Of a stretch of 64,000 bases of DNA, positions 17,542-31,215 are shown one piece after another. The notes beneath the pieces were generated by a model. That model had not been told where the DNA came from, searched no databases, and saw only the letters and a list, made by a program, of their open reading frames with translations. The position numbers and the translations under genes are program-made. The stretch comes from Basidiobolus meristosporus CBS 931.73 (Eukaryota; Fungi; Basidiobolomycota). The stretch covers positions 1 through 64,000 of the forward strand of contig MCFE01000359.1 in assembly GCA_002104905.1 (NCBI GenBank), read 5' to 3'. How positions within the stretch are numbered: position 1 is the stretch's first letter; every line of letters starts with the position of its first letter.

Positions 17542-20454
17542 TGTTATAAGAGTCTTGGAGATATTGGAAGTGATTGGGAGAACAAGTAGATTGTGTGGTT
17601 ATCACTTAATGATTTGTTGAATATAAAAGTGGTATTTATGCTTTTACCTGGTCTTGGCATACAAACACATAAAACAGGTTAAGGAAGGTCCCAAAGACAG
17701 GTGTGCAAAGTTTGGGGCTGTTTGGACAACTTTGAGAATTTTCATGATCTGGGTACCTGGTATTTTGATGAAAATATTGCAAGTAAATCCCAACAAGTAA
17801 TTTGGTCAGTATTCTCTAGGATATGAAGATAATGATCTAAGTGACTAAGTTAGGTGAATATTTAGGTGGAACTACAAACTTTTACAACACATGAAAACAT
17901 ATCAATAATTGATATGGAAAGATCTATGATCCATGATCAAAGATTATCCTATGATTTTTGGGTGGAATCAGTTGCCACAGCTGTATACCTTAAAAATAAG
18001 AGTTATAACGGAATACTTTGTAATTCTACTCCATTTGAAGCATGGTATGGATACAGACCCAGTGCAGAACATATAGGAATATTTGGGTGTACTGCATGTG
18101 CCAAGAAACTGCCTAGAGATCAGTCAAAATATGAGCCAAAAACTGTAAAATGCATATTTTTTGGCTACTGCAATGAGAGTCAAGCATACAGACTCTACAA
18201 TACCAAAGCAAAGAAGCTAACCAGGTCCAGGGATGTGCTGTTTGATGAAAATTCAAAATTTTCACAAAAAATGTCATCAGATGATGACAAAAATCTGATA
18301 TCAAGTCCACCAATTGTCAGGATTGAATCAGAGCAAAGCAATGAAGATTTTTTCACTCCAGAGGACTCTCCAACCATGGTTCATCCTGAATCAGTGCCTA
18401 TAAATATCACAGAAGTGAGCATTACAGTATCAAATGCCTGGAGATCTAATTAGACAAGAAATAGCCTAAATTTCTATATCAATGAGGGTACAAACCTAGC
18501 CTATGCCTATTCAGTCCATATTGATGAGCCCCAGACTGTAAAGAGGTTCTAAATAGCCCTCAGACAAAGTTTTGGAGATCTGCTATGACTCAGGAATATC
18601 AGACCCTGATGGAAAATCTAACCAGGGACTTGGTCAAATTACTAATCAACCAAAAATCAATTGGATGCAGATGGGTCTTCAAGACAAAATACAAGGCTGA
18701 TGGTACAATTGAAAGATACAAAGCAAGACTTGTGGCCAAAGGATACTCTCAAACAAAAGGACCTGACTATACTGAGACCTTTGCACTGGTAGCCAAGTTT
18801 AATTCCATCATATTAATATTGGCAATAGCAGTCAAATATAAGTTTTTTAATCATCAAATGTATGTAAAGCTGCATTTTTGAATGGAGAACTTGATGAGGA
18901 CATGTATATGAACCAGCTTGATGGGTTAGTTGACCAAGATAACCCCCATTTGGTCTGCAAGCTTAAAAAGTTACTATATGGTCTCAAACAATCACCAAGA
19001 GCCTGGAATTGCAAGATAGATTCTTATATGGAATCTTTGAGTTTCAAAAGAAGTAATGCTGACTATAGTATATACTATAAGCCAGATAGAGCAAATCCAG
19101 TTATATTGGCTCTATATGTGGATGATCCTACTATAGCTGCCAACAACCTAGAAACATTGGAAGAGACTAAATCCAGCCTATCTAAGGAGTTCAAGATGTC
19201 TAATCTAGGAGAACTTAGTTACTACTTAGGGATTAAGTTCTCCATGGACAGAAGTACCCAGACTATTACCCTAAGCCAATCCAAGTATATTCAAGATATA
19301 CTAAAAAAGTACAAAATGGAAGACTGTAAACTGGCAGCTACCCCATTGGAGACAAACCTTAGCTTGGTCAAAACTCAACCAAACCAAGAGAGCTTGGTGA
19401 CATCTAAAAGCCCTGACTTTCCTTGTCAATCTATGGTTAGCAGTCTGACATATATCAGGCTTGCAACAAGTCCAGATATCTCATATTCAGTGGGAGTTGT
19501 CAGCCAACATAATCAGAACTTTGGATCTGATCATATTGCAGCAGTTAAGTGAATTTTTAGATACCTAAAAGGAACTACTGATATCTGCTTAAGATACACT
19601 TATAAGGATTCAGAGCAGGATCTTGTGGCATACTCTGATGCTGATTGGGGACAAAATATGGAAGTCAGAAGATCCACCGCAGGTTACACCTTTCTTTACT
19701 GTAAAGGAGCAATTTCATGGAATTCAAGAAAGCAACCAACCATAGCACTTTCTACCACAGAGGCAGAGTATATGGCAGCCAGTAAAGCTACAATAGAAGC
19801 AATGTGGTTAAGAAAGCTATTTACAGATTTAGGCCTATGCCAAAAAATGACTATTACTTTATTTCAAGATACTCAAGGATGTATACAATTAGGTAGAAAT
19901 CCAACTTTTCATGCTAGAACCAAGCACATAGATATTAGACATCATTTCATACGTGAAGCTATAGAGAATAACTTAGCTGGCTTAGCTTACTGTCCTACAG
20001 ATGAAAAGATTGCAGACATATTTACCAAACCATTAGCTAGAGAAGAGTTTGAATATCTTAGGTCAGAATTAGGACTAGTCAGTATGAACATTTAGCTGAG
20101 TGGCAATGTTGTAAAAATTTGTATTTCCGCATAAATATTCACCTAACTTAATCACTTAGATCATTACCTTAAAATCCTAGAGAATTCTGACCAAATTCCT
20201 TGTTGGAATTTACTTAGAATAATTTCACCAAAATATCAGGTACCCAGACATGAAAATTCTCAAAGTTGTCCAAACAGCCCCATACTTTGCACACATGCTC
20301 TTGGGACCTTTCATAACCTAATCTATGTGTTTGTAAGGCCAAGACCAGGTAAAAGTATAAATACCACTTTTATATTTAATAAACCATTAAGTGATAACCT
20401 CATAATCTACTTGTTCTCCCAATCACTTCCAATATCTCCAAGACTCTTACAACA

Positions 20455-21377
20455 ATCAAGGCAAATGCAGTTGAAGGCACTTTGTTCTTTCTTCTAGCAC
20501 TTTAAGGCTTCCTCTCCCACATTTTTAGGAGGGCATTCTTCTCCCATGACAAATACCCCAAAGGCCTCTTTCTTGTAGCAGCATCTTCATCTTCACCTTC
20601 CACACTTGGTTGTTAGATCCATTCAACTTTTCAGCAGAGGGAAGAATTCCAGCAATAGCAGTAGCAGATACTGCAGAGAGTGATATATTGAGGCTCATAG
20701 CCTGTTGTAAGAGTTATGAAGATATTGGAAGTGACAAGGAGAACAAGTAGATAATGTGCTTTCATGTACTGGCATATTTGTTGTAACAGTCTTGGAGATA
20801 TTGGAAGTGATTGGGAGGACAAGTAGATTATGTGGTTTTCACTTAATGATTTATTGAATGTAAAAGTAGTTTTTATACTCTACATGATCTTGGCATATCA
20901 AACACATAGAATAGACTAAGGAGGGTCCCAAGAACATGTGTGCAAAGTTTGGGGCTGTTTGGATAACTTTGAGAATTTTCATGTTCTGGGTACCTGGTAT
21001 TTTGGTGAAAATATTCCAAGTAAATCCCAACAAGGAATTTGGTCAGTATTCTTTAGGATCTGAAGGTAATGATCTAAGTGACTAAGTTAGGTGAATATTT
21101 AGGTGGAAATACAAATTTTTACCACAATTATTACATAATATTGGCAAAACAGCTTGAATAATATGTTCAGGAAGGTCCCAAGGACATGTGGACAAAGTTT
21201 GGGGCTGCTTGAGCAACTTATTAAAACTTAATGTTCTGGGTACCTGATGTTTGACAAGCCTATTCTAAGTAAATCCCAATTAGGAATTTGTTCAGCATCC
21301 TCCAGGATTTGTAGGTAATGATCTAGGTAACTAAATTAGGTGGGCATTTAAGTGGAATTGCAAGCTTTTGCAATACA
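20455..21377 (-). mobile_element. Copia fragment D: diverged 5' LTR (20703-21377) with a nested LTR (20779-21126), PBS and gag start
   Basis: The gag N-terminus at 20455-20690 is homologous to 17290-17530. The PBS is at 20690-20702. The outer LTR is a more diverged subfamily; the inner LTR matches the main family. Confidence 0.75.
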
Positions 21378-21394
21378 GCTTGGGGCTCATAGCC

Positions 21395-21742
21395 TGTTCT
21401 AAGAGTCTTGGAACTATTGGCAGTGATTGGGAGAACAAGTAGATTATGTGGTTTTCACTTAAGGATTTGTTGAATGTAAAAGTAGTATTTATACTTTGAT
21501 GTGGTCTTGGCATAACAAGCATATAGAACAGGTTTAAGAAGGTCCCAAGAGCATATGTGCTAAGCTTGGGGCTGTTTGGACAACATATCAAAACTCTATG
21601 TTCTGGGTATCTGATGTTTTGGCAATAGAAGTCCAGGTAAATCCCAACAAGGGATTTGGTCAGAATTCTCTAAGATTTATAGGTTATGATCTAAGTGACC
21701 AAGTAAGGTGAATACTTAGGTGCAATTTCAAAATTTGCAGCA
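21395..21742 (-). mobile_element. Copia LTR with PBS, in tandem with fragment D
   Basis: TGTTCTAAGAGTCTTGG...GCAGCA is homologous to the other LTRs. PBS at 21382-21394. Confidence 0.8.
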
Positions 21743-22846
21743 AAGCAGACATATTTACCAGGAGGAGACTAGGCAAAATAGTATTCATCACAGATTTGGT
21801 CACTGGCTGCTTGCTACTTCAAATTCTCAGTTGCAATTTCTGGTGGAAGGAAAAACACCAGCTGGATACCAGCAAAATACCATTAGAATACCAGCTGAAT
21901 ATTTGGCTGAAAATCAGATGAATTCCAACTTCAAGATTTCTCATAGGGTACAGTTAAGAGGAATAACAGCTAAATACCACAGGAAATTCAAGCTTGATAT
22001 TGTTCAAGGGGTATTTGTGGTAGTTTTGACCTCCCCTAAGCCTGATACTTTGCTTAGGGATTGTAGGCTTTATCCAAGTGGGAGTTACCCCATGGGGTTC
22101 TGATGTTATCCATTGAAAAGTTGCACCAACCTACAAGCAAGTAAAAGCTACCTTGTCATCTTTCAGTTTTCAGGCTAACTGGTGCATGAGCCCCAGGCAG
22201 GCAATACACAACACCACCAGTTCTCCAAATCACTTTCAACACTCCCCAAAATCCTCCATGCGTACTATGGGATATGTTGTGTGGTAGAGATGATTTGTCA
22301 CACAAGGGATCAGAGATTTTGCTCCACTGTTAGCCCCAAAATCAAATTAGACTCTCAAGCCAATGTGATGAGTAAATCATCTCTTGAGGGATTTGTCCAA
22401 TGGAGAGGGTATGTCAACCCGCCACATTGTTCCAAGTTAAACATGAAACCTGAATCGACAGAGTTGGGTGGTGAACCAATCGATTGCCACAAGTTTTATT
22501 GGAGGGTAACCTGCATACAGCCTTGCCACCCAGCCTTGCTACCCCCACGATCAAGCCCATCCAACTGCCTCAGCAAACCGCGTCCATCAACACCCGGCCG
22601 ACCATGACAAGCAGCTCAGGTGAAATCATGAATCACATCGTTCGGGATGAAGTGAATCGGTTGACTGGACGGTTCACACGCACAATCGATACGAATGGGT
22701 AGTTAATCTATGCAAGGTGGCTGATTTGGGGTGCATAGTCGGATTAAGCTATGACGCTCTCGTGACCTAATAATCGGCCCATGAGGTGGGTGGAGTCCGC
22801 AACGTATCTTGGTGAGCGGGAACCCTTATGAACCAGAACGGGGAAC

Positions 22847-25800
22847 ATGAACAACGAGAGCATCGCGAACCTACTGAACCGCGGGACCTTGCAGGAGGTC
22901 TCGGCACACCTGTCGAACGACACCTGGGAGCCCTGGAAGCTGAGTGTCACCGAGGTAGCTGACAAGCTGGCCGTCGACCCAAGCGTCGGTCTTGATCAGC
23001 GAGAAGCGCAACTCCGGTTGAAGCTGTTCGGCGAGAACCAACCACCCGACCGGAAACGACGTTTGAAATGGCACCAATTCGTGCTGCACGTGGTGACGGA
23101 TCCGGTGATCTTCCTACTGATAGCGGTCTGTGTATTATATCTGCTTTGGTACAATGGGATGGGGGCATTACCAGTGGTGCTGGTGGTTGTCCTCACGTTG
23201 GGAACGGAGGTAGGGGTCACTTTAGAGTTCAACCGTACCCCAGGTTGGGGGGATCGTGTCCGTCAGTTCTAAACCACGTAACAGCTTAGTATCCAATGGA
23301 AAGGGAACCTCACCGTCGACACCTTCACGGCCGAGATTCCGGAGAATGTCCTGGTCGTCCGCGAAGGCCACGAGCGAATCGTTGTCTCCCGGAAACTCGT
23401 CCCCGGGGATATTGTGATTGTGTCGCACGGGCAAAGAGTACCTGCCGATGGGATACTCATCAACTCGCAACACCTGAGACTAGACGAGAGTATATTCACC
23501 GGGGGGTATCACGAGGTACAGAAGTACACTTCTAACGAGCCATATGAAGCCAATGGTAAGCAAACGAAAATCCCCGTTGTTATGTGACTGCTAGCGACCG
23601 CCCATTAATTTTGCCTCTGGAAAGGGAACCTCGTCTCCTCCGGCTATCTGTACTTCGGAAGCAGCGTCGTCCAAGGAAAAGGTCAGTCCAGTTGGTATGG
23701 AAATCCCCCGGGGCGTCATGTGATAACGTCGATAACAACTAGGGGTCCTGATAGTGACCGCCACTGGAAAACATACTCGCTTGGCCAATGTCAAGAGCTC
23801 CACGATCTACGAAGACAAAAAGACCCCGCTGCAAGCGCTGACAAGAAATGTCACCCTTTGTTTGGCTCTCTTGGCATTGCTCGTATCCAGCGTCTTGCCG
23901 GTGGTCGGTTTGCTGAACGGGATCGACTGGCACGATGCACTGCTGACCGGAATGGGAATGGCCTTCGTGTTGATCCCCAGCAAGCTCCCTTCATTGGTCA
24001 ACGCCATCCTGATCGTGTCGGCGCACCGGCTGTCGCAAAGACGGCTTCTTTTACGTAGATTGGATGCCACGGAGGCCTTGGGCTCCGTCTCGGCCATTGT
24101 GACGGACAAAACGGGAACTCTGACTTGCAATGAGCTGAAAGTGGCCTCGGCGATAGTCCTCACCCGACCGGACCGCCAATCCCCTGAGAGCTTTCAGATC
24201 AACTGTCGAAGAATCCCCGTCACCTCCAGCAAGGACATTGCCCAGTACCTACTGCCCCTTACCATCACATGGACCCTCTCGATGGACCAATTCGCGAGCG
24301 ACATGTTGTTCCAAATGGTCCAAGAAGGCCATGGAGCTGGACCTGCGCATTCCTCACCATTACCGTTGGCAAGGGGGATCGACAAGGATGTGTTTGACTC
24401 GGCGATCTTCGATTTCTTTAGCTCGGCCGAGATCCCGGTGGAGGTGCAGCGCTATCTGATCCAATCCGCGCTACTCGTCTTCTCCAAATTCCCGGTGCCC
24501 ATTTCTGAGGAGCCGTTTGACGTGGTCAACCGGGTATCCTTCAGGACTCGCGGGTCCACGCGCAACCGGACGAGCGGGAGCAGGATCACCGTGGTCAGGG
24601 GTGCTCCGGAATCCATCCTGGACCTTTGCAATCGCATCTGGGTGAGTGGGTATGAGCGGGAATGCTCGGAATTTGACGAGAACCATCCCCCTCAGATTGA
24701 CCCCGACATGCTGAACGATGTGGAGGTCCTGACGGGGTATATCACTTCAAAGCTGACGGAGTCTATCAACGACGTCGCTCGAAAAGGCAGCCGGATTTTC
24801 GGCTACGCTTACTCGACCTCGGCTCACACCGAAGGCGAGGAGCTTCCTCGAGACTTCATCTTCGTCGGAGCCTATGTTTTCACGGACCCCATCCGGAAGG
24901 AAGTCCCTCACGCAGTTTCAGAATGCCAGGGGGCCGGGATCAAAGTTGTCATGGCCACGGGTGATTACCCGGGGACTGCGTTGGCGATTGCATCCAAGGT
25001 TGGCATCAACCAGGTCGCTTCTACTGAGCAAGCACCGGTTCTCCTTGGAAGACACCTCGACGAGATGTCTAGCGGGGCGTTGCTTGGGGAAGCGATTGAA
25101 AGAACCGATGTCTTCGCCAGGGTCACTCCGGCCCATAAGCTTCGGATCGTCCAGGCTTTGCAATCGCAAGGCCACGTGGTCGCCTTCATCGGGGACGGGA
25201 TCAAGGACGCCACAGCGTTGTATGCGGCCGACGTGGGTATTACAATCGGAGGGGCGGCCGCCACGGCAGATATGGCTTCGGACCATGCCTCGTTGGTCGT
25301 TCTTGGAAACCACTTCGACGCAGTGGTTTACTGCCTCCGAGAAGGACGGCATATGTTCGACAACATGAACAAAGTGGTCACCTTCTATCTGGCGTGCAAG
25401 CTAGGCCTCGCATCCTTGTTCACGCTCGCCATCATATTGCGCGCCAGCTTCCCGTTGAACCTGGTGCAAATCATACTGCTCGAAATGTTCGTCAACCTGG
25501 GGTCTGCCATCACGTTCGTGGTGGAGAGGGCGGAAATCGACATCATGAGGATCCCGCCGACTCTGGTGAACCAGCGTGGGGTCCGGAAAGGCCACCTGGG
25601 CTCTGCCATTGGTCGCCAAATCGTCTTCTATGCCGCTCTACTGCTTTTGTCGACTGGCAGCTCCTACTTCTATGGGGCCATGTACAGCGCCCAAGAGGAG
25701 TCCGCAGCAACCATGCTCTTTGTGTCCTACCTTATCAATCACATCACCTTAGGCCTGGCCATCCGGTCCCGCAGGACACCCATCAGAAAGCAAGGTCTCT

Positions 25801-26057
25801 TTAGCAATGGAAACTTTCTGATGTGGTTCGCGCTGGTGGTGAGTTGTATACTGGCCTACATATTTCTTCCCACCCTCCGAGCCACCCTTGATCTCACCAC
25901 TCTGAACCAATGCGAATGGTTGATGATCCTGACAGGCGCCCTATGCTTACTGATCGTATCGGAAGTATGTAAAGAGCTGTGTTGGCACTACGCGAAGCGT
26001 GAGAAGGAACGGCGCGATGACCATCGAAGCTCCGAACGAGCACCGCTCCTGATTTAA
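22847..26057 (+). CDS. P-type ATPase (type II-like cation pump fold) with non-canonical motifs; 4 exons
   Basis: Predicted exons 22847-23209, 23285-23555, 23625-23681, 23743-26057 (GT-AG). Cation_ATPase_N-like GLDQREAQLRLKLFGEN, VPADG, DKTGTLT, RGAPE, DPIRKEV, MATGD, VFARVTPAHK and C-terminal TM helices. Confidence 0.9.
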
Positions 26058-26168
26058 TTCAATGGCACTTGTTCCTGGCAAAAGAATGTACAGATCCCAC
26101 ACTATCTACAAGTGTATCCAAATAGAACAAAACGTATCAATAAAATTCTGTGGGGATTAACATTGGAA

Positions 26169-27302
26169 CTACGCAGGACTAGATGCCCTACGGTATATAT
26201 AAAATTTATGAAGGACCGGGTGGTTCCGGCCAGAGTCCTGGTTGTCCTGGTCGACGGCATCGGGCTGGTTCCTCCAGTCGACGATCTCCATATGGATTAG
26301 TTCGAACTTCGCCTCCCGCATCTCCTCCTCGAACAGCTCGATTTCGGTCAGGTAGCGGTTTCGCAACGGAAGCACGAAATAGATCCGGGAGCTAGTGGCC
26401 CGGCTGAGGAACTGCTCCAGAACGATGGGGATTGCCCGCGCCTGCCAGGCATCATAGATAGCGTCAGTGGCGATGATGTTTTCGAATTGGTCTTGATACA
26501 ACTCCTCGCCACGGTCCGCACTGATGGGGATGTTTCGGTTGATGTTGTCTATGTTCTTGGCGCTGTCTTTGAAGTACTCCCACCAGTCAAGCTTCTGCAC
26601 CTGACATATCTCTTCGCATTCGTTGCGATTGACATTGATCCGGACGTTGTCGAGGACACTAGGATGGTAATCGGTAAGCATCACATGGGACGCACCCAGC
26701 TTGGCACACATCAATCCAGCCAATCCAGTGCCGCATCCCAACTCCAGTATTCTTTGTCCGGACAGATCCAACACGTAGCCAGCTTCCCCGACCACCACCT
26801 CACGCTCGTACCCCTTGGTGTGGCCGCATAACAACTTTCCCATCACAATGCTAGCAGACCAGGTTCGACAGCCCAGATCGGCCTCCGCAAAGGTAGGCTC
26901 CCGAATATCCAGCCGAACGCTCTCCATACCTTTACGTTGACACTCGAATATCCAGAGTTGAGAGACTGGTCCGGTAGCAGCTCTACCACAACGGTTTGCT
27001 ATCATGGAAGTCAACCGCTCCATAAGCGGATCCTCGTCGAACATGTCCTTTGACCGACGCTTCAACACCCTGATCACCCAGTCGTTGCACATATTTCTGA
27101 CCATGGTGGAGTTTGTGGAGGGGTCGGAGGTGGTGTCTTCGACCTTGGGGGGCTCTGGCCGGTCCCAGATCTTTATGTCGACGTTTTTCTCGCCGAAATG
27201 TTTGTCTATGGTGTCCAGTATCGAGGTCACCTCCGCCTCGTCCATAGGATCGCAGCGCTTCAGTCGTAGCAGCAACTCGAGATGCTCTTCGTTGGTCCCC
27301 AT
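26169..27302 (-). CDS. Protein-lysine methyltransferase, Methyltransf_16 (METTL21/EFM-like) family
   Basis: 377-aa ORF with DLGCRTWSASIV, ILELGCGTGLAGL, LTDYHPSVLDN and IIATDAIY motifs. Confidence 0.85.
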   Translation of the reverse strand: MGTNEEHLELLLRLKRCDPMDEAEVTSILDTIDKHFGEKNVDIKIWDRPEPPKVEDTTSDPSTNSTMVRNMCNDWVIRVLKRRSKDMFDEDPLMERLTSMIANRCGRAATGPVSQLWIFECQRKGMESVRLDIREPTFAEADLGCRTWSASIVMGKLLCGHTKGYEREVVVGEAGYVLDLSGQRILELGCGTGLAGLMCAKLGASHVMLTDYHPSVLDNVRINVNRNECEEICQVQKLDWWEYFKDSAKNIDNINRNIPISADRGEELYQDQFENIIATDAIYDAWQARAIPIVLEQFLSRATSSRIYFVLPLRNRYLTEIELFEEEMREAKFELIHMEIVDWRNQPDAVDQDNQDSGRNHPVLHKFYIYRRASSPA

Positions 27303-27559
27303 GATCGGAATATCTGCAGTGTGGTGCTAAAAAGAAGGAGCCCAGAACTGCACGAACTCAAGCGACAAGCCTCGAATCTGAAAAAAAATCAACGGATATT
27401 TATTCAAGTTCGATTTAAACTTCGCTAAACTACGGATAAGTCTGCCTCAAGAATCCAGATTGTTTGATGTACATCAACTGGCTAGCATCAGAACACCCCC
27501 GACACGCGAGGTGCGTGCCCAGTGGAGATACGACCTGCGCGCGGATTGCTTTCGGATGT

Positions 27560-28232
27560 TCATTGCAACTGAGGCTTTGGCACGCTATCAGTTACCCAAT
27601 TCATGTATTCTTTGCTTCCATCGTCGATCTTGCAACATAACAACCTCGATTTTAGCCGTCGGAAGGTTCGAGTAAAGTTTCAACGACATACCTTGATCGA
27701 AATAACCTCCGGAACGTCATACGGGTGGTTCTCGTTCACGTGTTGAATGACGTTCTCCACTTTGTCGGCGGCGGTTTTCATCATCAACAGGACCTCGGTG
27801 GACTCCTCGATCTCCCCGTCCCACCCTAGCGATAGAAAAAAACGTTTACTAACCGGACCTATGGCCAGGAGAAACCAAGACTAGAAGGCACGAACAATAC
27901 ATGGAGGTCACCTTGGGGATGACGTTGATGCATGCCACCAACTTCTCGGTAAGCAACCCCCGGGAAAGCTTCTTGGCTATTTCCTCGTTTGGGCAGGTGA
28001 CGAATATGGCCCGAATATCAGGCACGCATTTGGACATGTTGGTAAGGGTTCGATAGCAAAGGCGGGATAAAGGTCTTCCTCTCGGCCAAGCGGTTCGTCG
28101 GCAAGTGTGGTTAAAGACAGGAGTGTGGATTCCGGGCAGTGGCCGAAACGGGTTACAGACTGAGTTGTTCGAGAACCTTTTAATCAAACCCAAGTTCAAG
28201 GCGAGTGGCTTCAGAATGGTCACTTGCCTCAT
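27560..28232 (-). CDS. cutA: CutA divalent-cation tolerance family protein; 3 exons, long N-terminal extension
   Basis: IFVTCPNEEIAKKLSRGLLTEKLVACINVIPKVTSMY / WWDGEIEESTEVLLMMKT...HPYDVPEVISIK / IDDGSKEYMNWV, joined by GT-AG introns. Confidence 0.9.
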
Positions 28233-28700
28233 GGAAATATCATCAATGATTCTGAGAATGGAGTACTGATCGTTCAGGCGTTCAAGTGGACTTGGCTAAA
28301 ACCCGAAACCTGCATCATTCATGTTGGGGAGCTGATTAATCGTTAGTCGATCCGGCGGGTAGCAGGCGGGTAAGGTAAGGAACCAGGTAAAGGGAGGGAA
28401 AGGCGGTAGGAACGCCGAATGCAGTAAAAAAGTATAAAATGTAAGTATACAGTGTAAGTAAACATTGTTCGTGACTGCAGCCGTGGTTCGGTCGGGAGAA
28501 TGTATTCGAGAATGAGCAAATTAAGGTGATATTTGTGTAATTGCCTATTATGGTGCAGCCAAACCGAGAAATTGAGAAATTTCGAAACATCACTTTTGGT
28601 TATCTGAGGAAGCTGTATGGCGATGTATGGTGATGGTGATGGAAATCAACAATGGGAATTTACGGATATATCACTCATTTGCATACCGCGTGGAATACTA

Positions 28701-28755
28701 GATTTGTACGTATTCTTGAACCTGATTTGCACGTATTCTTGAACCTGATTTGTGC
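28701..28755. repeat. 23-bp tandem repeat, ~2.4 copies
   Basis: GATTTGTACGTATTCTTGAACCT, GATTTGCACGTATTCTTGAACCT, GATTTGTGC. Confidence 0.85.
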
Positions 28756-28845
28756 TCGCCATAGCCAGGCGATCAGAATCCGTATTTAAACAGGGCCAGC
28801 ACCCCGTCAGAGGCCAGCACTCCAGCCAATTCAATATCCTCCTTA

Positions 28846-29973
28846 ATGGTTCTTGTAAGATTACAATCCACCGACCCAAGTAAGGGAGTCCCCATCCCCT
28901 TCCATAAGGTGGACCTGATGGATGTTAGCCACGTCGAGCCATTCTCGGATTTCTCATCCAGCTCAAGTAGCTCCACCGAAACCTTATCAGGCTCGCCAAT
29001 CCCACCTCGCTTCGTCTTCAAAGCCCCCAAACCATCACCACAGAAAAAGAGCCGCCCCGCAAAAAAAGAGGCCTGCCACCGGGGTACCCTCTGCGAGATT
29101 CCCCTTCTTGCGGCCCTCAAGAAACGTAAGAGCAACCTGTCCTTCAAGGAGCTCTACGGAAACATCACCAACGCATTCTGTATGGGTTCTGGCGGGGAAG
29201 TCTACATGGCAACCTCCCCCAAGACGGGCAAGAAGTATGCCATCAAGTCGTTCCGCCCGCGTTTTTCGTACGAAACCCCCGCCGAGTACTGCATGAACAT
29301 CAGCAACGAGATCTACATCGCCGCCTCCCTAGATCACGAAAACATCGTCCGCACTGTTGATGTGTTGGAGGAAAATGGCAAGATCTACGAGGTCATGGAG
29401 TATTGCCCGCGCGATCTGTTCTCGGTGTTTGAGACCTCAAACCCCACCGAGAGCGAAGTCAACAAATACTTCGTCGAGCTGGTCCATGGCATTGCTCATC
29501 TCCATAGCCGTGGCATCGCCCATCGCGACCTCAAGCTGGAGAATGTGTGCATTGGCGAAGACGGCCACCTGAAGATCATCGATTTCGGGTTTGCCACCAA
29601 CTTCTACAGCCCTTACCACCTCGAGTATATCCCGGCCAGCGGGGTGATCGGTTCAAGCACGTTTATCGCGCCTGAGGTGTGGACAGCAGAGAGCTACGAC
29701 CCATCGAAGGACGACATATGGGCCTTGGGCGTTCTCTATATCTGCATGCTAACGCGACTCTTCCCATGGGAGAAGGCCACCGCGGACGACAAAAATTTCG
29801 CCCTCTTCATGAACTCCTGGGACTCAGTCCCCCTACTCAAGAAATGCCCAGCCGAGGCGCTCCCCCTGCTTAAGCGAATGCTCGCGATCGACCCCAGCCA
29901 GCGTGCTAGTATCAAAGACGTCATGCAAGATCCTTGGTTTCAATCGCTTGAGGCCCAAGTCAAGGGCAACTGA
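28846..29973 (+). CDS. Ser/Thr protein kinase, HAL4/SAT4/HRK1/NPR1-like
   Basis: Intronless 375-aa ORF with GSGGEV, YAIK, HRDLKLEN, LKIIDFG, GSSTFIAPE and DIWALG. Confidence 0.9.
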   Translation: MVLVRLQSTDPSKGVPIPFHKVDLMDVSHVEPFSDFSSSSSSSTETLSGSPIPPRFVFKAPKPSPQKKSRPAKKEACHRGTLCEIPLLAALKKRKSNLSFKELYGNITNAFCMGSGGEVYMATSPKTGKKYAIKSFRPRFSYETPAEYCMNISNEIYIAASLDHENIVRTVDVLEENGKIYEVMEYCPRDLFSVFETSNPTESEVNKYFVELVHGIAHLHSRGIAHRDLKLENVCIGEDGHLKIIDFGFATNFYSPYHLEYIPASGVIGSSTFIAPEVWTAESYDPSKDDIWALGVLYICMLTRLFPWEKATADDKNFALFMNSWDSVPLLKKCPAEALPLLKRMLAIDPSQRASIKDVMQDPWFQSLEAQVKGN

Positions 29974-31215
29974 GATTCAGCGCCCCACTTAACGAATTGT
30001 ACATTACCTAGATCTAATTTTAATGGCAGTAACTGTAATTACGCAACCTTCATAATGGCACTACTAGCATGTTGATAAAATCCCTGAACCACAACCCAAA
30101 CCGCACCATGTAATTCTAGCCTTATCGTCCAAGTAAATCCACCCTGTTATCGATTCTCGCAATCGGGGCTTTCAGGAAAGAAAAATTCCAAGATTACCCA
30201 AAAAGGGAATGGAGAAATCCCGTTTTTGCCTCCTGCCCACGTCTGATTTGGAAAGTAGAACTCCCATAACGACACCTATGGAAGTTGAGAGTTCGTTCGG
30301 GAAGGCGAGTTGACTTGATGAAAACATGAGGCTTGCCTTATTCACCACTCAAGGATACTTGCTCCGACACAACTTGCCGACCCACATGATTGTCAAGCCT
30401 TGATGTAGTAATGTAATATAGGCCTCTTTTGGCGAGCAATGTAGAATAAAGCCATGTAGAATAAATCCCATTTGATGAGCCATATGGAATCAATCCTTTT
30501 GAAGCGCAGCCTGAAAATTTAACCTACCCTTGCGGTGGATGCAGTGTGTTTCTATTCCAAGATTAATTCAAGGTTCTAGCACCTAACAGTTGGGTTGAAA
30601 AGCGTTTTCATTAGCCAAATAAAAATAGGCTTATTTGTAGACATTGCTAAAAATCGCTCATATCTAAGCCTGATTTGGAAGCTAGGGTCATGCTAAAATA
30701 TATCCCGAAATATTGATTATCAATCCACTGCTGGGTATTCTACCAGCGGATCCTGGAAGATACCGGATCACCGGGTACCATCATTGTTCGACGACGGATA
30801 TCGGGAATATTTGACCGCATGCGCATTTTCCAAGTTGAGTCCTGGATGCTTAGGCATCGCGGTGAGGTAATGAAGAGCAGCAATGGTAGCAGTGTGAGTG
30901 GAAGTAGCAGTGGGGATCTCCTCTGGTAAATGGTGCAGTGTTGGTGAACATTTTTATTTACTTGGGCTACAGCTTCCTCGCCAGTAGGGGCGTAATCGTC
31001 ATTACATTACAAAGAGTATCGCCTTGAGAATAGATGAATAGCGCTATTGAAAACCTAATAAATAACCCCACTGGTTCTTGATTCAGTACGGTCAAAACGA
31101 GCGGTAGCGACCGGCATATGGTCAACCTAAGTGGAGCACAAACTACACAACAGCAACGCCTTCCTCTCAATCATGGCTAAATTCGCGGCACACTGATCAG
31201 CAGCATGGCTGGCCT

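Follow-up and report, generated by a model that had tools for sequence, protein, structure and literature searches.

A gene of Basidiobolus meristosporus CBS 931.73 encodes an undamaged P-type ATPase in which conserved ion-site and catalytic residues have been replaced. It lies in a window of 64,000 nt, the whole stretch of DNA analysed here (contig MCFE01000359.1, positions 1 to 64,000). P-type ATPases are a textbook case of near-absolute conservation of such residues, and to our knowledge naturally degenerate members that are kept by selection have rarely been reported. Among the readings offered in a preliminary description of the locus, a pseudo-pump was the best supported, based on the ion-site and catalytic losses, purifying selection, and a shift of constraint from the membrane core to the nucleotide-binding (N) domain. 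The protein would then be an old, selection-maintained derivative of its family that pumps no cations, turns over very slowly, and retains ATP binding and possibly autophosphorylation. We give this reading a probability of about 0.5.

Gene model and state of the motifs

The gene (22847-26057, + strand) has four exons and encodes 1001 aa (Table 1). The product is identical to the NCBI protein ORX90783.1 of B. meristosporus, annotated as "calcium ATPase" (working identifier P0121), and the translations of all four exons are exact substrings of that protein in the correct order. All three introns are of the GT..AG type. The frame of about 1000 residues and the splice sites are thus undamaged, as had been proposed at the outset. 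For analyses at full length, P0121 and P0001 were taken from the database; their sequences equal the exon translations. The domains PF00690, PF00122, PF00702 and PF00689 all scored above their gathering thresholds in ORX90783.1; a Pfam search for an extra domain in its N-domain insertions gave no match, with PF13246 below the cutoff (15.8 vs 21.7 bits). The GC3 of the gene was 0.70, compared to 0.69 in the neighbouring gene, and the introns had a GC content of 0.46-0.53. An AT-rich transposon field adjoins the gene. A second copy in the assembly (L003) differs at 9 of 3211 nt and carries identical motif codons. Six of the differences are exonic, three non-synonymous and three synonymous, and the divergence between the two copies is a uniform 0.3% in genes and spacers alike.

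Table 1. Exons, introns and motifs of the gene in the window; relatives are members of the family alignment.
Feature	Position	Strand	Details
Exon 1, aa 1-121	22847..23209	+	Cation_ATPase_N, then TM1-TM2; PF00690, E 1.7e-14; substring of P0121 from residue 1
Intron 1, 75 nt, phase 0	23210..23284	+	GTAGGG..AACAG; B. ranarum intron at identical position and phase
Exon 2, aa 122-212	23285..23555	+	Start of actuator domain, including degenerate TGES; PF00122, E 8.1e-17; P0121 from residue 122
TGGY for TGES (Glu195 to Gly, Ser196 to Tyr)	23498..23509	+	Glu in 114/114 relatives; B. ranarum TGEN
Intron 2, 69 nt, phase 1, AAG acceptor	23556..23624	+	GTAAGC..GAAAG; in NCBI model; position and phase kept in B. 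ranarum
Exon 3, aa 212-231	23625..23681	+	Actuator-domain strands; translation matches P0121
Intron 3, 61 nt, phase 1	23682..23742	+	GTCAGT..AACTAG; position kept in B. ranarum
Exon 4, aa 231-1001 and stop	23743..26057	+	End of A domain, TM3-4, P and N domains, TM5-10; PF00122, PF00702, PF00689; P0121 from residue 232
TM4 PSKL for family PEEL (Glu310 to Ser, Glu311 to Lys)	23976..23987	+	First Glu in 116/118 relatives; B. ranarum PGAL
DKTGT phosphorylation motif, intact, Asp352	24105..24119	+	B. ranarum DKSGT
TGD motif, intact	24957..24965	+	B. ranarum TSD
Hinge GDGIKD for GDGIND (Asn718 to Lys), then ATAL for APAL	25191..25208	+	Asn in 118/118 relatives; B. ranarum keeps GDGIND
TM6 LLEMFVN for family LELFMD (Glu811 kept, Asp815 to Asn)	25476..25496	+	Asp in 118/118 relatives; B. 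ranarum likewise Asn

Motif conservation was scored by aligning the protein with 118 members of the family. Every substitution listed in the preliminary description (TGGY, PSKL, GDGIKD and LEMFVN) and the intact DKTGT were found at the positions given there, and the replaced positions proved to be near-invariant among the relatives. In the hinge, GDGIKDAT, Pro721 is changed to Thr in addition to Asn718 to Lys, and both Asp residues are retained. When aligned with the Ca2+-ATPase of Listeria (LMCA1), for which a structure has been solved, the replaced sites fall opposite its TGES, IPEAL, GDGVND and INLVND motifs, with IPEAL aligned to IPSKL and INLVND to LEMFVN. The B. meristosporus protein has retained Asp352, Lys353, the TGD Asp638, Lys696, Asp715 and Asp719, the nucleotide-pocket residues Phe489, Arg581 and GAPE, and the family-site residues Lys783 in TM5, Glu811 in TM6 and His897 in TM8. 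The near-invariant columns number 81; 69 of them are conserved in B. meristosporus and 66 in B. ranarum, and the other family members keep 75/76 to 81/81 (0-4 changed vs 12-15 in Basidiobolus). Nine losses are common to both Basidiobolus species, including the TM4 Glu and the TM6 Asp. Three are found only in B. meristosporus (Leu135Phe, Glu195Gly and Asn718Lys) and six only in B. ranarum. TGES, DKTGT, (T/S)GD and GDGxND are kept by all other fungal members.

Family placement and predicted fold

The P-type ATPase superfamily model TIGR01494 gave 221.9 bits (cutoff 62.3), and the superfamily motif DKTGT is present, but the actuator Glu of TGES/DGET and the hinge GDGxNDxP are not. On sequence grounds the protein falls into a P2-like family, mostly prokaryotic and uncharacterised, for which we use the working name PEEL/ELFMD. 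Its members are about 866 aa long in bacteria and archaea and longer in Kickxellales, Ramicandelaber and Gonapodya, the other fungal groups in which the family was found, and they often carry automatic names ('Ca2+-transporting ATPase', 'P-type Ca2+ transporter type 2C'). In the tree, nine fungal rows formed a clade (SH-aLRT 100) that was sister to the prokaryotic members, and within it Basidiobolus was sister to P0003 and Coemansia. The nearest relatives share 31-35% identity with the Basidiobolus protein. The tree placement was thus that of a family member, but the signature ion-site residues PEEL and ELFMD read PSKL and EMFVN. The Pfam domain set is shared with the family, as are the Lys of TM5 (YxLACK), the Glu of TM6 and the His of TM8, which are all that remains of the family ion site in Basidiobolus, and N-domain insertions are shared with the fungal members. 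Unlike the rest of the family, the Basidiobolus pair lacks the Glu-Glu of TM4 and the Asp of TM6, and B. meristosporus additionally lacks the Glu and Ser of TGES and the Asn and Pro of the hinge. A canonical paralogue in the same genome, for which the preliminary description had proposed a search, was not found in Basidiobolus among the matches listed for two queries, the window protein and the canonical P0003.

No NCBIfam equivalog model reached its cutoff for ORX90783.1. The best was TIGR01522, for PMR1/SPCA Ca2+-ATPases, which was rejected at 386 bits (cutoff 798.3), with the Ca2+-coordinating TM4 Glu and TM6 Asn/Asp missing. The CtpE family (family 23) was also rejected as a known subfamily, as it carries VPEGL. 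A literature search on pseudo P-type ATPases, P-type ATPases of Basidiobolus, the PEEL motif and subfamilies of early-diverging fungi found nothing specific. With no equivalog reached and no paper found, we could not assign the substitutions to an already characterised subfamily; such an assignment would have spoken against the preliminary description. The label 'calcium ATPase' on ORX90783.1 and ORX76780.1 is, judged by the model score, the low identity to Ca2+-ATPases and the altered ion site, not supported.

The AlphaFold model of the protein (pLDDT 86.7, pTM 0.86) has ten TM helices and A, P and N domains. Foldseek matched it to E1-state SPCA1, Na,K-ATPase and SERCA with target TM-scores of up to 0.84, and with an E-value of 1.5e-54 to SPCA1a and other P2 pumps. 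The prediction suggests that the 10-TM fold of a P-type ATPase has been retained. By sequence, the best match with a solved structure was LMCA1, a bacterial P2A Ca2+-ATPase (E 7e-85), and by fold it was E1-state SPCA1a (target TM-score 0.83). Identity to SPCA/PMR1 and LMCA1 is only about 22-25%, and in contrast to them the Basidiobolus protein lacks equivalents of the Ca2+-coordinating TM4 Glu and TM6 Asp.

The B. ranarum orthologue and shifted constraint

B. ranarum has a syntenic orthologue with about 61% identity. A Methyltransf_16 gene is the neighbour in both species, and the three introns have equal positions and phases. The codon-position differences between the species were 0.30/0.19/0.62 for positions 1/2/3. 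We obtained a pN of 0.23 against a saturated pS of 0.81 (uncorrected ratio 0.29), where the difference in GC3 between B. meristosporus (0.70) and B. ranarum (0.34) inflates pS, so that dN/dS is not precisely quantifiable. The dN was 0.26, and dS could not be computed by the NG86 and YN00 methods of Biopython because synonymous sites are saturated. The comparison with an orthologue named in the preliminary description thus pointed to purifying selection, but it could not yield a precise ratio. The terminal branches were equal (0.30 and 0.31), and non-synonymous change was about 1.6-fold faster than in the neighbouring gene (61% vs 76% identity). The substitution pattern, together with the conserved frame, introns and synteny, shows that the reading frame of about 1000 residues, its introns and its genomic position are held by purifying selection, as would be the case for a pseudoenzyme with a retained role. 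The idea of a young, relaxed duplicate at a heterochromatin edge had to be abandoned in light of the syntenic orthologue with the same introns, the saturated synonymous sites, and the failure to find a canonical family paralogue among the Basidiobolus matches listed.

The aligned motifs of the two species show that the TM4 glutamates and the TM6 Asp were lost in their common ancestor. After the species split, different catalytic residues were lost, namely the TGES Glu and the hinge Asn in B. meristosporus, and in the B. ranarum lineage DKTGT became DKSGT and TGD became TSD. The distribution of constraint was then compared with that in the canonical fungal pair P0003/P0014, with an overall identity of 0.62 vs 0.60 in the Basidiobolus pair. 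In TM1-4 the identity was 61/131 (47%) in the Basidiobolus pair and 95/130 (73%) in the canonical pair (Fisher p 1.6e-5). In the second part of the P domain it was 0.61 vs 0.75, and in the N domain 0.71 vs 0.57. Between the two Basidiobolus species the N domain is thus the best conserved region and TM1-4 the least. Conservation of TM1-4 is low in the P0014/P0047 pair as well. By these identities, constraint has moved off the membrane core TM1-4 and onto the N domain.

A putative pseudo-pump and its alternatives

TGGY falls on a stretch of six consecutive G (ccggggggtat) in which one might imagine a homopolymer error, but a one-base change would break the frame, which is open and alignable on both sides. 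The identical motif codons in the second copy make a sequencing or assembly error unlikely. Nine substitutions common to B. ranarum and an exon model equal to the deposited one also argue against an artefact at the motif codons or in the exon model, which we consider hardly credible. Drift towards a pseudogene, with function recently lost in B. meristosporus through Glu195Gly and Asn718Lys before the frame was broken, would fit the confinement of the most damaging catalytic changes to one lineage, the faster non-synonymous evolution, the transposon field next to the gene, and the equal numbers of non-synonymous and synonymous changes between the copies, although these are too few for a verdict. 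It is nevertheless improbable, as the 1001-codon frame is open with GT..AG introns in both assembly copies, GC3 is gene-like, and the terminal branches are equal, with no speed-up in B. meristosporus. Furthermore, the B. ranarum gene is intact despite catalytic-motif changes of its own, which suggests long-standing tolerance and not recent death.

The protein might instead be a working, possibly slow pump for a new substrate (proton, anion, organic or lipid-like) with a neutralised site (PSKL or PGAL, and EMFVN), whose catalysis would rest on the retained Asp352, Lys696, Asp715 and Asp719. A TM4 Glu is also missing from P4 pumps (PISL) and P5B pumps (PPAL). Both species have retained the residues for phosphorylation and nucleotide binding, the TM5 Lys783, TM6 Glu811 and TM8 His897 of the family site are in place, B. 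ranarum has the TGES Glu, and purifying selection is strong. Coemansia paralogues such as P0047, P0138, P0141 and P0035 resemble Basidiobolus in their altered TM4 and TM6 (PAEIP, PAAIP, ALFMD, VLFTD and IKLVAD) but differ in that TGES, DKTGT, TGD and GDGIND are intact, and they therefore look like working pumps with changed specificity. They show that the membrane site is evolvable in the fungal clade. Set against this are the missing TGES Glu and hinge Asn in B. meristosporus; we know of no functional P-type class, P4 and P5 included, that does not retain the TGES Glu. The TM4 replacements also differ between the species (SK vs GA), and a newly tuned and selected binding site should be well conserved, the opposite of the 47% found in TM1-4. 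The earlier proposal of an altered-substrate pump with a Lys in TM4 thus keeps its general part, but the Lys is not conserved (PGAL in B. ranarum), and TGGY and GDGIKD weigh against it. We regard a new-substrate pump as doubtful.

In P2 ATPases the Glu of TM4 and the Asp of TM6 serve as cation ligands, and in the preferred reading, that of a pseudo-pump, a hard cation would not be coordinated in the B. meristosporus protein. The Glu of TGES/DGET drives dephosphorylation (PMC13466520). TGGY and GDGIKD together should cripple this step, and with the TGES Glu and the hinge Asn missing we infer a lack of catalytic turnover. ATP is probably still bound and the aspartyl-phosphate may form, but the phosphate would not be hydrolysed at a useful rate. 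With slow hydrolysis and no cation coordination, the most likely role would be that of a membrane-anchored switch, sensor or scaffold that depends on ATP or phosphorylation, and not that of a transporter. Several points temper this reading. The B. ranarum orthologue may still turn over, because its Thr to Ser and Gly to Ser changes are conservative and the TGES Glu (TGEN) and GDGIND are kept. The complete phosphorylation machinery in both species would also fit a working enzyme, and some Coemansia paralogues, which lack TM4 or TM6 acids (PAAIP, VLFTD and IKLVAD) but have intact catalytic motifs, indicate that loss of the acids alone is no proof of lost transport in the family. A more tentative form of the pseudo-pump, which we think rather unlikely, is a one-way phospho-switch in which ATP is bound, Asp352 is autophosphorylated without a transported ion, and an E2P-like state would be long-lived for want of the Glu and Asn needed for dephosphorylation. 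The new Lys311 in TM4 and the family Lys783 in TM5 may serve as tethered charges in B. meristosporus, and the pump cycle would serve signalling or scaffolding, not transport.

The nearest parallel we came across is in alveolate guanylate cyclases, with their P4 module. In these P4-ATPase and guanylate cyclase fusions (P4GC; for example Plasmodium GC-beta, Cryptosporidium and Tetrahymena) the ATPase module is retained and structurally conserved, and in some lineages the DGET Glu, the DKTGT Asp or both have disappeared, with a possible non-catalytic supporting role (PMC13466520). Whereas this module is of the flippase type and joined to a cyclase, the Basidiobolus protein is stand-alone and P2-like, and it keeps the phospho-Asp and has lost cation-site and dephosphorylation residues instead. 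The Basidiobolus pair is a natural experiment in which the cation site was lost first, followed by species-specific catalytic losses, while constraint persisted on the phospho-Asp, Mg2+ ligands and ATP pocket, and most of all on the N domain. The parent PEEL/ELFMD family, with no characterised member, has a wide distribution across bacteria, archaea and early-diverging fungi. If the protein is expressed, it would offer a tractable test of non-pumping uses of the P-type ATPase scaffold, and the phospho-switch, if true, would be a free-standing P2-type pseudo-pump maintained by selection, of which we could find no earlier description.

Gene structure and replaced motifs

The ATPase gene lies at positions 22847-26057 on the forward strand, where three-frame translation and splice signals gave a model of four exons, listed in the table, and three introns (75, 69 and 61 nt), all of the GT..AG type. 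The exons were searched individually, and all four translations were exact, ordered substrings of the 1001-aa protein ORX90783.1, deposited as 'calcium ATPase [Basidiobolus meristosporus CBS 931.73]'. Thus, the model equals the deposited NCBI model, and full-length analyses used the database protein. This bore out the preliminary description of an undamaged frame of about 1000 aa with intact splice sites. Intron 2 (23556-23624) ends in an AAG acceptor (ggaaag) rather than the usual YAG, is present in the NCBI model and keeps its position in B. ranarum. The protein contains the Pfam domains Cation_ATPase_N, E1-E2_ATPase, Hydrolase and Cation_ATPase_C, and PF13246 fell below the cutoff because the N domain has strongly diverged from the generic model.

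The gene sits just within the gene-like side of a boundary near 22 kb, where the GC content switches from 36-41% in AT-rich, repeat-laden DNA to 51-56%. The AT-rich field (1-22000) stops roughly 800 bp short of the ATPase start codon, and its repeats recurred many times inside the window when contig MCFE01000917.1 (L003) was compared with it by BLAST. A Methyltransf_16-family gene (377 aa, 26169-27302, reverse strand) stands tail-to-tail with the ATPase, with synteny conserved in B. ranarum.

Exons and sequence motifs of the ATPase gene
Feature	Position	Strand
Exon 1	22847-23209	+
Exon 2	23285-23555	+
Exon 3	23625-23681	+
Exon 4	23743-26057	+
Actuator, TGES replaced by TGGY	23498-23509	+
TM4, PEEL replaced by PSKL	23976-23987	+
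Phosphorylation site DKTGT, intact	24105-24119	+
TGD, intact	24957-24965	+
Hinge, GDGIND replaced by GDGIKD	25191-25208	+
TM6, LELFMD replaced by LLEMFVN	25476-25496	+

Every motif reading made earlier was reproduced, and in an alignment of 118 homologues the replaced positions were near-invariant: the TGES Glu was conserved in 114/114, the TM4 Glu in 116/118, and the hinge Asn and TM6 Asp each in 118/118. They align opposite TGES, IPEAL, GDGVND and INLVND of the solved Listeria Ca2+-ATPase. A second copy of the gene in the CBS 931.73 assembly, on L003 (ORX76780.1), differed at 9 of 3211 nt, none within the motif codons, which makes sequencing error there unlikely. The block present in two copies (18820-30676 of the window and L003:5967-17828) carries the ATPase, Methyltransf_16, CutA1 and a kinase; the second copy represents either a haplotig or the product of a very recent segmental duplication. 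Divergence was about 0.3% in unique DNA and 5-10%, with indels, in the upstream AT-rich repeats. The two proteins differ at three residues (H169Y, G627E and M958V).

Family and phylogenetic position

The closest relatives were 31-35% identical and belong to a large, mostly bacterial and archaeal P2-like family of about 866 aa with the signatures IPEELP (TM4), YYLACK (TM5) and LELFMD (TM6), here called the PEEL/ELFMD family. The generic P-type model was the only NCBIfam model passed; no equivalog was reached, the best being PMR1-type (386 bits, where the cutoff is 798), and literature searches yielded no publication that deals with this family or with P-type ATPases of Basidiobolus. The family seems to lack a characterised member, and the possibility that the substitutions mark an already characterised subfamily was not borne out. 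CtpE, the one characterised 'new' family that was compared, carries VPEGL and was rejected as an identity.

Fungal members came from Kickxellales (Coemansia, Linderina, Martensiomyces, Dipsacomyces), Ramicandelaber, Gonapodya and a Logan contig (P0003). Among the matches listed, the named eukaryotic members were all from early-diverging fungi (Kickxellales, Ramicandelaber, Gonapodya and Basidiobolus), a distribution reflecting either ancestry with loss in Dikarya or an old transfer. Maximum-likelihood analysis placed the fungal proteins in a single clade (support 100), with the Basidiobolus pair on a long stem (1.0 substitutions per site) as sister to P0003 and Coemansia. All other fungal members have TGES, DKTGT, (T/S)GD, GDGxND and the TM6 Asp intact. 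The Coemansia paralogues P0047, P0138, P0141, P0035, P0034 and P0048 combine an altered ion site (TM4 PAEIP or PAAIP; TM6 ALFMD, VLFTD or IKLVAD) with intact catalytic motifs, and by their motifs seem to have diversified separately in pump specificity.

Constraint between the two Basidiobolus species

In B. ranarum the orthologue is KAK9762695.1, a protein of 999 aa with about 61% identity whose gene lies at L001:3000-6237; it also has a Methyltransf_16 neighbour downstream, and its introns match at all three positions and phases. This synteny, together with saturated synonymous sites, contradicts the earlier idea of a young duplicate; a canonical family paralogue in Basidiobolus was not found among the matches listed in either of two protein searches. 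Differences at codon positions 1/2/3 were 0.30/0.19/0.62. Between the two species pN was 0.23 and pS 0.81, and the raw pN/pS of 0.29, uncorrected as formal dS is not computable at this saturation, is an upper bound. The pS is also raised by a GC3 shift (0.70 in B. meristosporus, 0.34 in B. ranarum), a gap that will distort dS-based dating within the genus. The ATPase GC3 is close to that of the neighbouring gene (0.69) and above the ATPase intron GC (0.46-0.53). The neighbouring methyltransferase showed 76% identity and a pN of 0.13, so the ATPase evolves about 1.6-fold faster yet is clearly constrained, and the substitution pattern clearly indicates purifying selection.

Of 81 alignment columns with family-wide conservation of 95% or more, B. 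meristosporus kept 69 and B. ranarum 66, compared with 75/76 to 81/81 in other members. Nine losses are common to both species and thus probably date to their common stem, among them the TM4 Glu, a TM4 Gly, the TM6 Asp (now Asn), the TGES Ser, and Pro, Met and Val of the hinge. A further three occur in B. meristosporus alone (Leu135Phe, the TGES Glu replaced by Gly, the hinge Asn by Lys) and six in B. ranarum alone, where DKTGT has become DKSGT and TGD has become TSD, among others. Both kept the phospho-Asp, Lys353, TGD Asp, Lys696, both hinge Asp, Phe489, Arg581 and GAPE.

Regional constraint was compared with a canonical pair of similar overall identity (P0003 and Coemansia P0014, 0.62; Basidiobolus pair, 0.60). 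In TM1-4, 61/131 residues were identical in the Basidiobolus pair against 95/130 in the canonical pair (Fisher p 1.6e-5), and the second P-domain part was also less conserved (0.61 against 0.75, p 0.012). In contrast, the N domain was more conserved (0.71 against 0.57, p 0.007) and was the most conserved part between the two species. An AlphaFold model from a 92-sequence alignment was confident (pLDDT 86.7, pTM 0.86), and the predicted fold matched E1-state structures of the P2 pumps SPCA1, Na,K-ATPase and SERCA.

A proposed pseudo-pump and its alternatives

Mutagenesis of SERCA links Glu183 and Asn706 to E2P processing, which is blocked when they are substituted. Coordination of the cation falls to the TM4 Glu and the TM6 Asp. 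Hydrolysis of the aspartyl-phosphate is carried out by a water molecule that the Glu of TGES/DGET activates (PMC13466520). Given these roles, the B. meristosporus sequence is most economically read as that of a pseudo-pump kept for some other role (probability about 0.5); this part of the preliminary description stands as the best reading, now for a gene shown to be under purifying selection. The main rival, a slow pump acting on a new substrate, is less likely: the phosphorylation machinery is retained, the B. ranarum actuator reads TGEN and the Coemansia paralogues pair altered TM sites with intact catalytic motifs, but TM4 carries different substitutions in each Basidiobolus species and TM1-4 is the region of least constraint. 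Recent decay in B. meristosporus is improbable, as both assembly copies are intact, the terminal branches are equal (0.30 and 0.31) and codon bias is gene-like.

The nearest parallel described so far is the P4-ATPase module carried by alveolate guanylate cyclases, where the DGET Glu or DKTGT Asp was lost in some lineages with the structure conserved (PMC13466520). In contrast to that module, the B. meristosporus ATPase is free-standing and P2-like, and keeps the phospho-Asp with its ion site and dephosphorylation residues lost. As a pseudo-pump, the protein would keep its fold and ATP binding and might still be phosphorylated, but would no longer be able to occlude a cation; the B. meristosporus protein would also have lost resetting at a useful rate.
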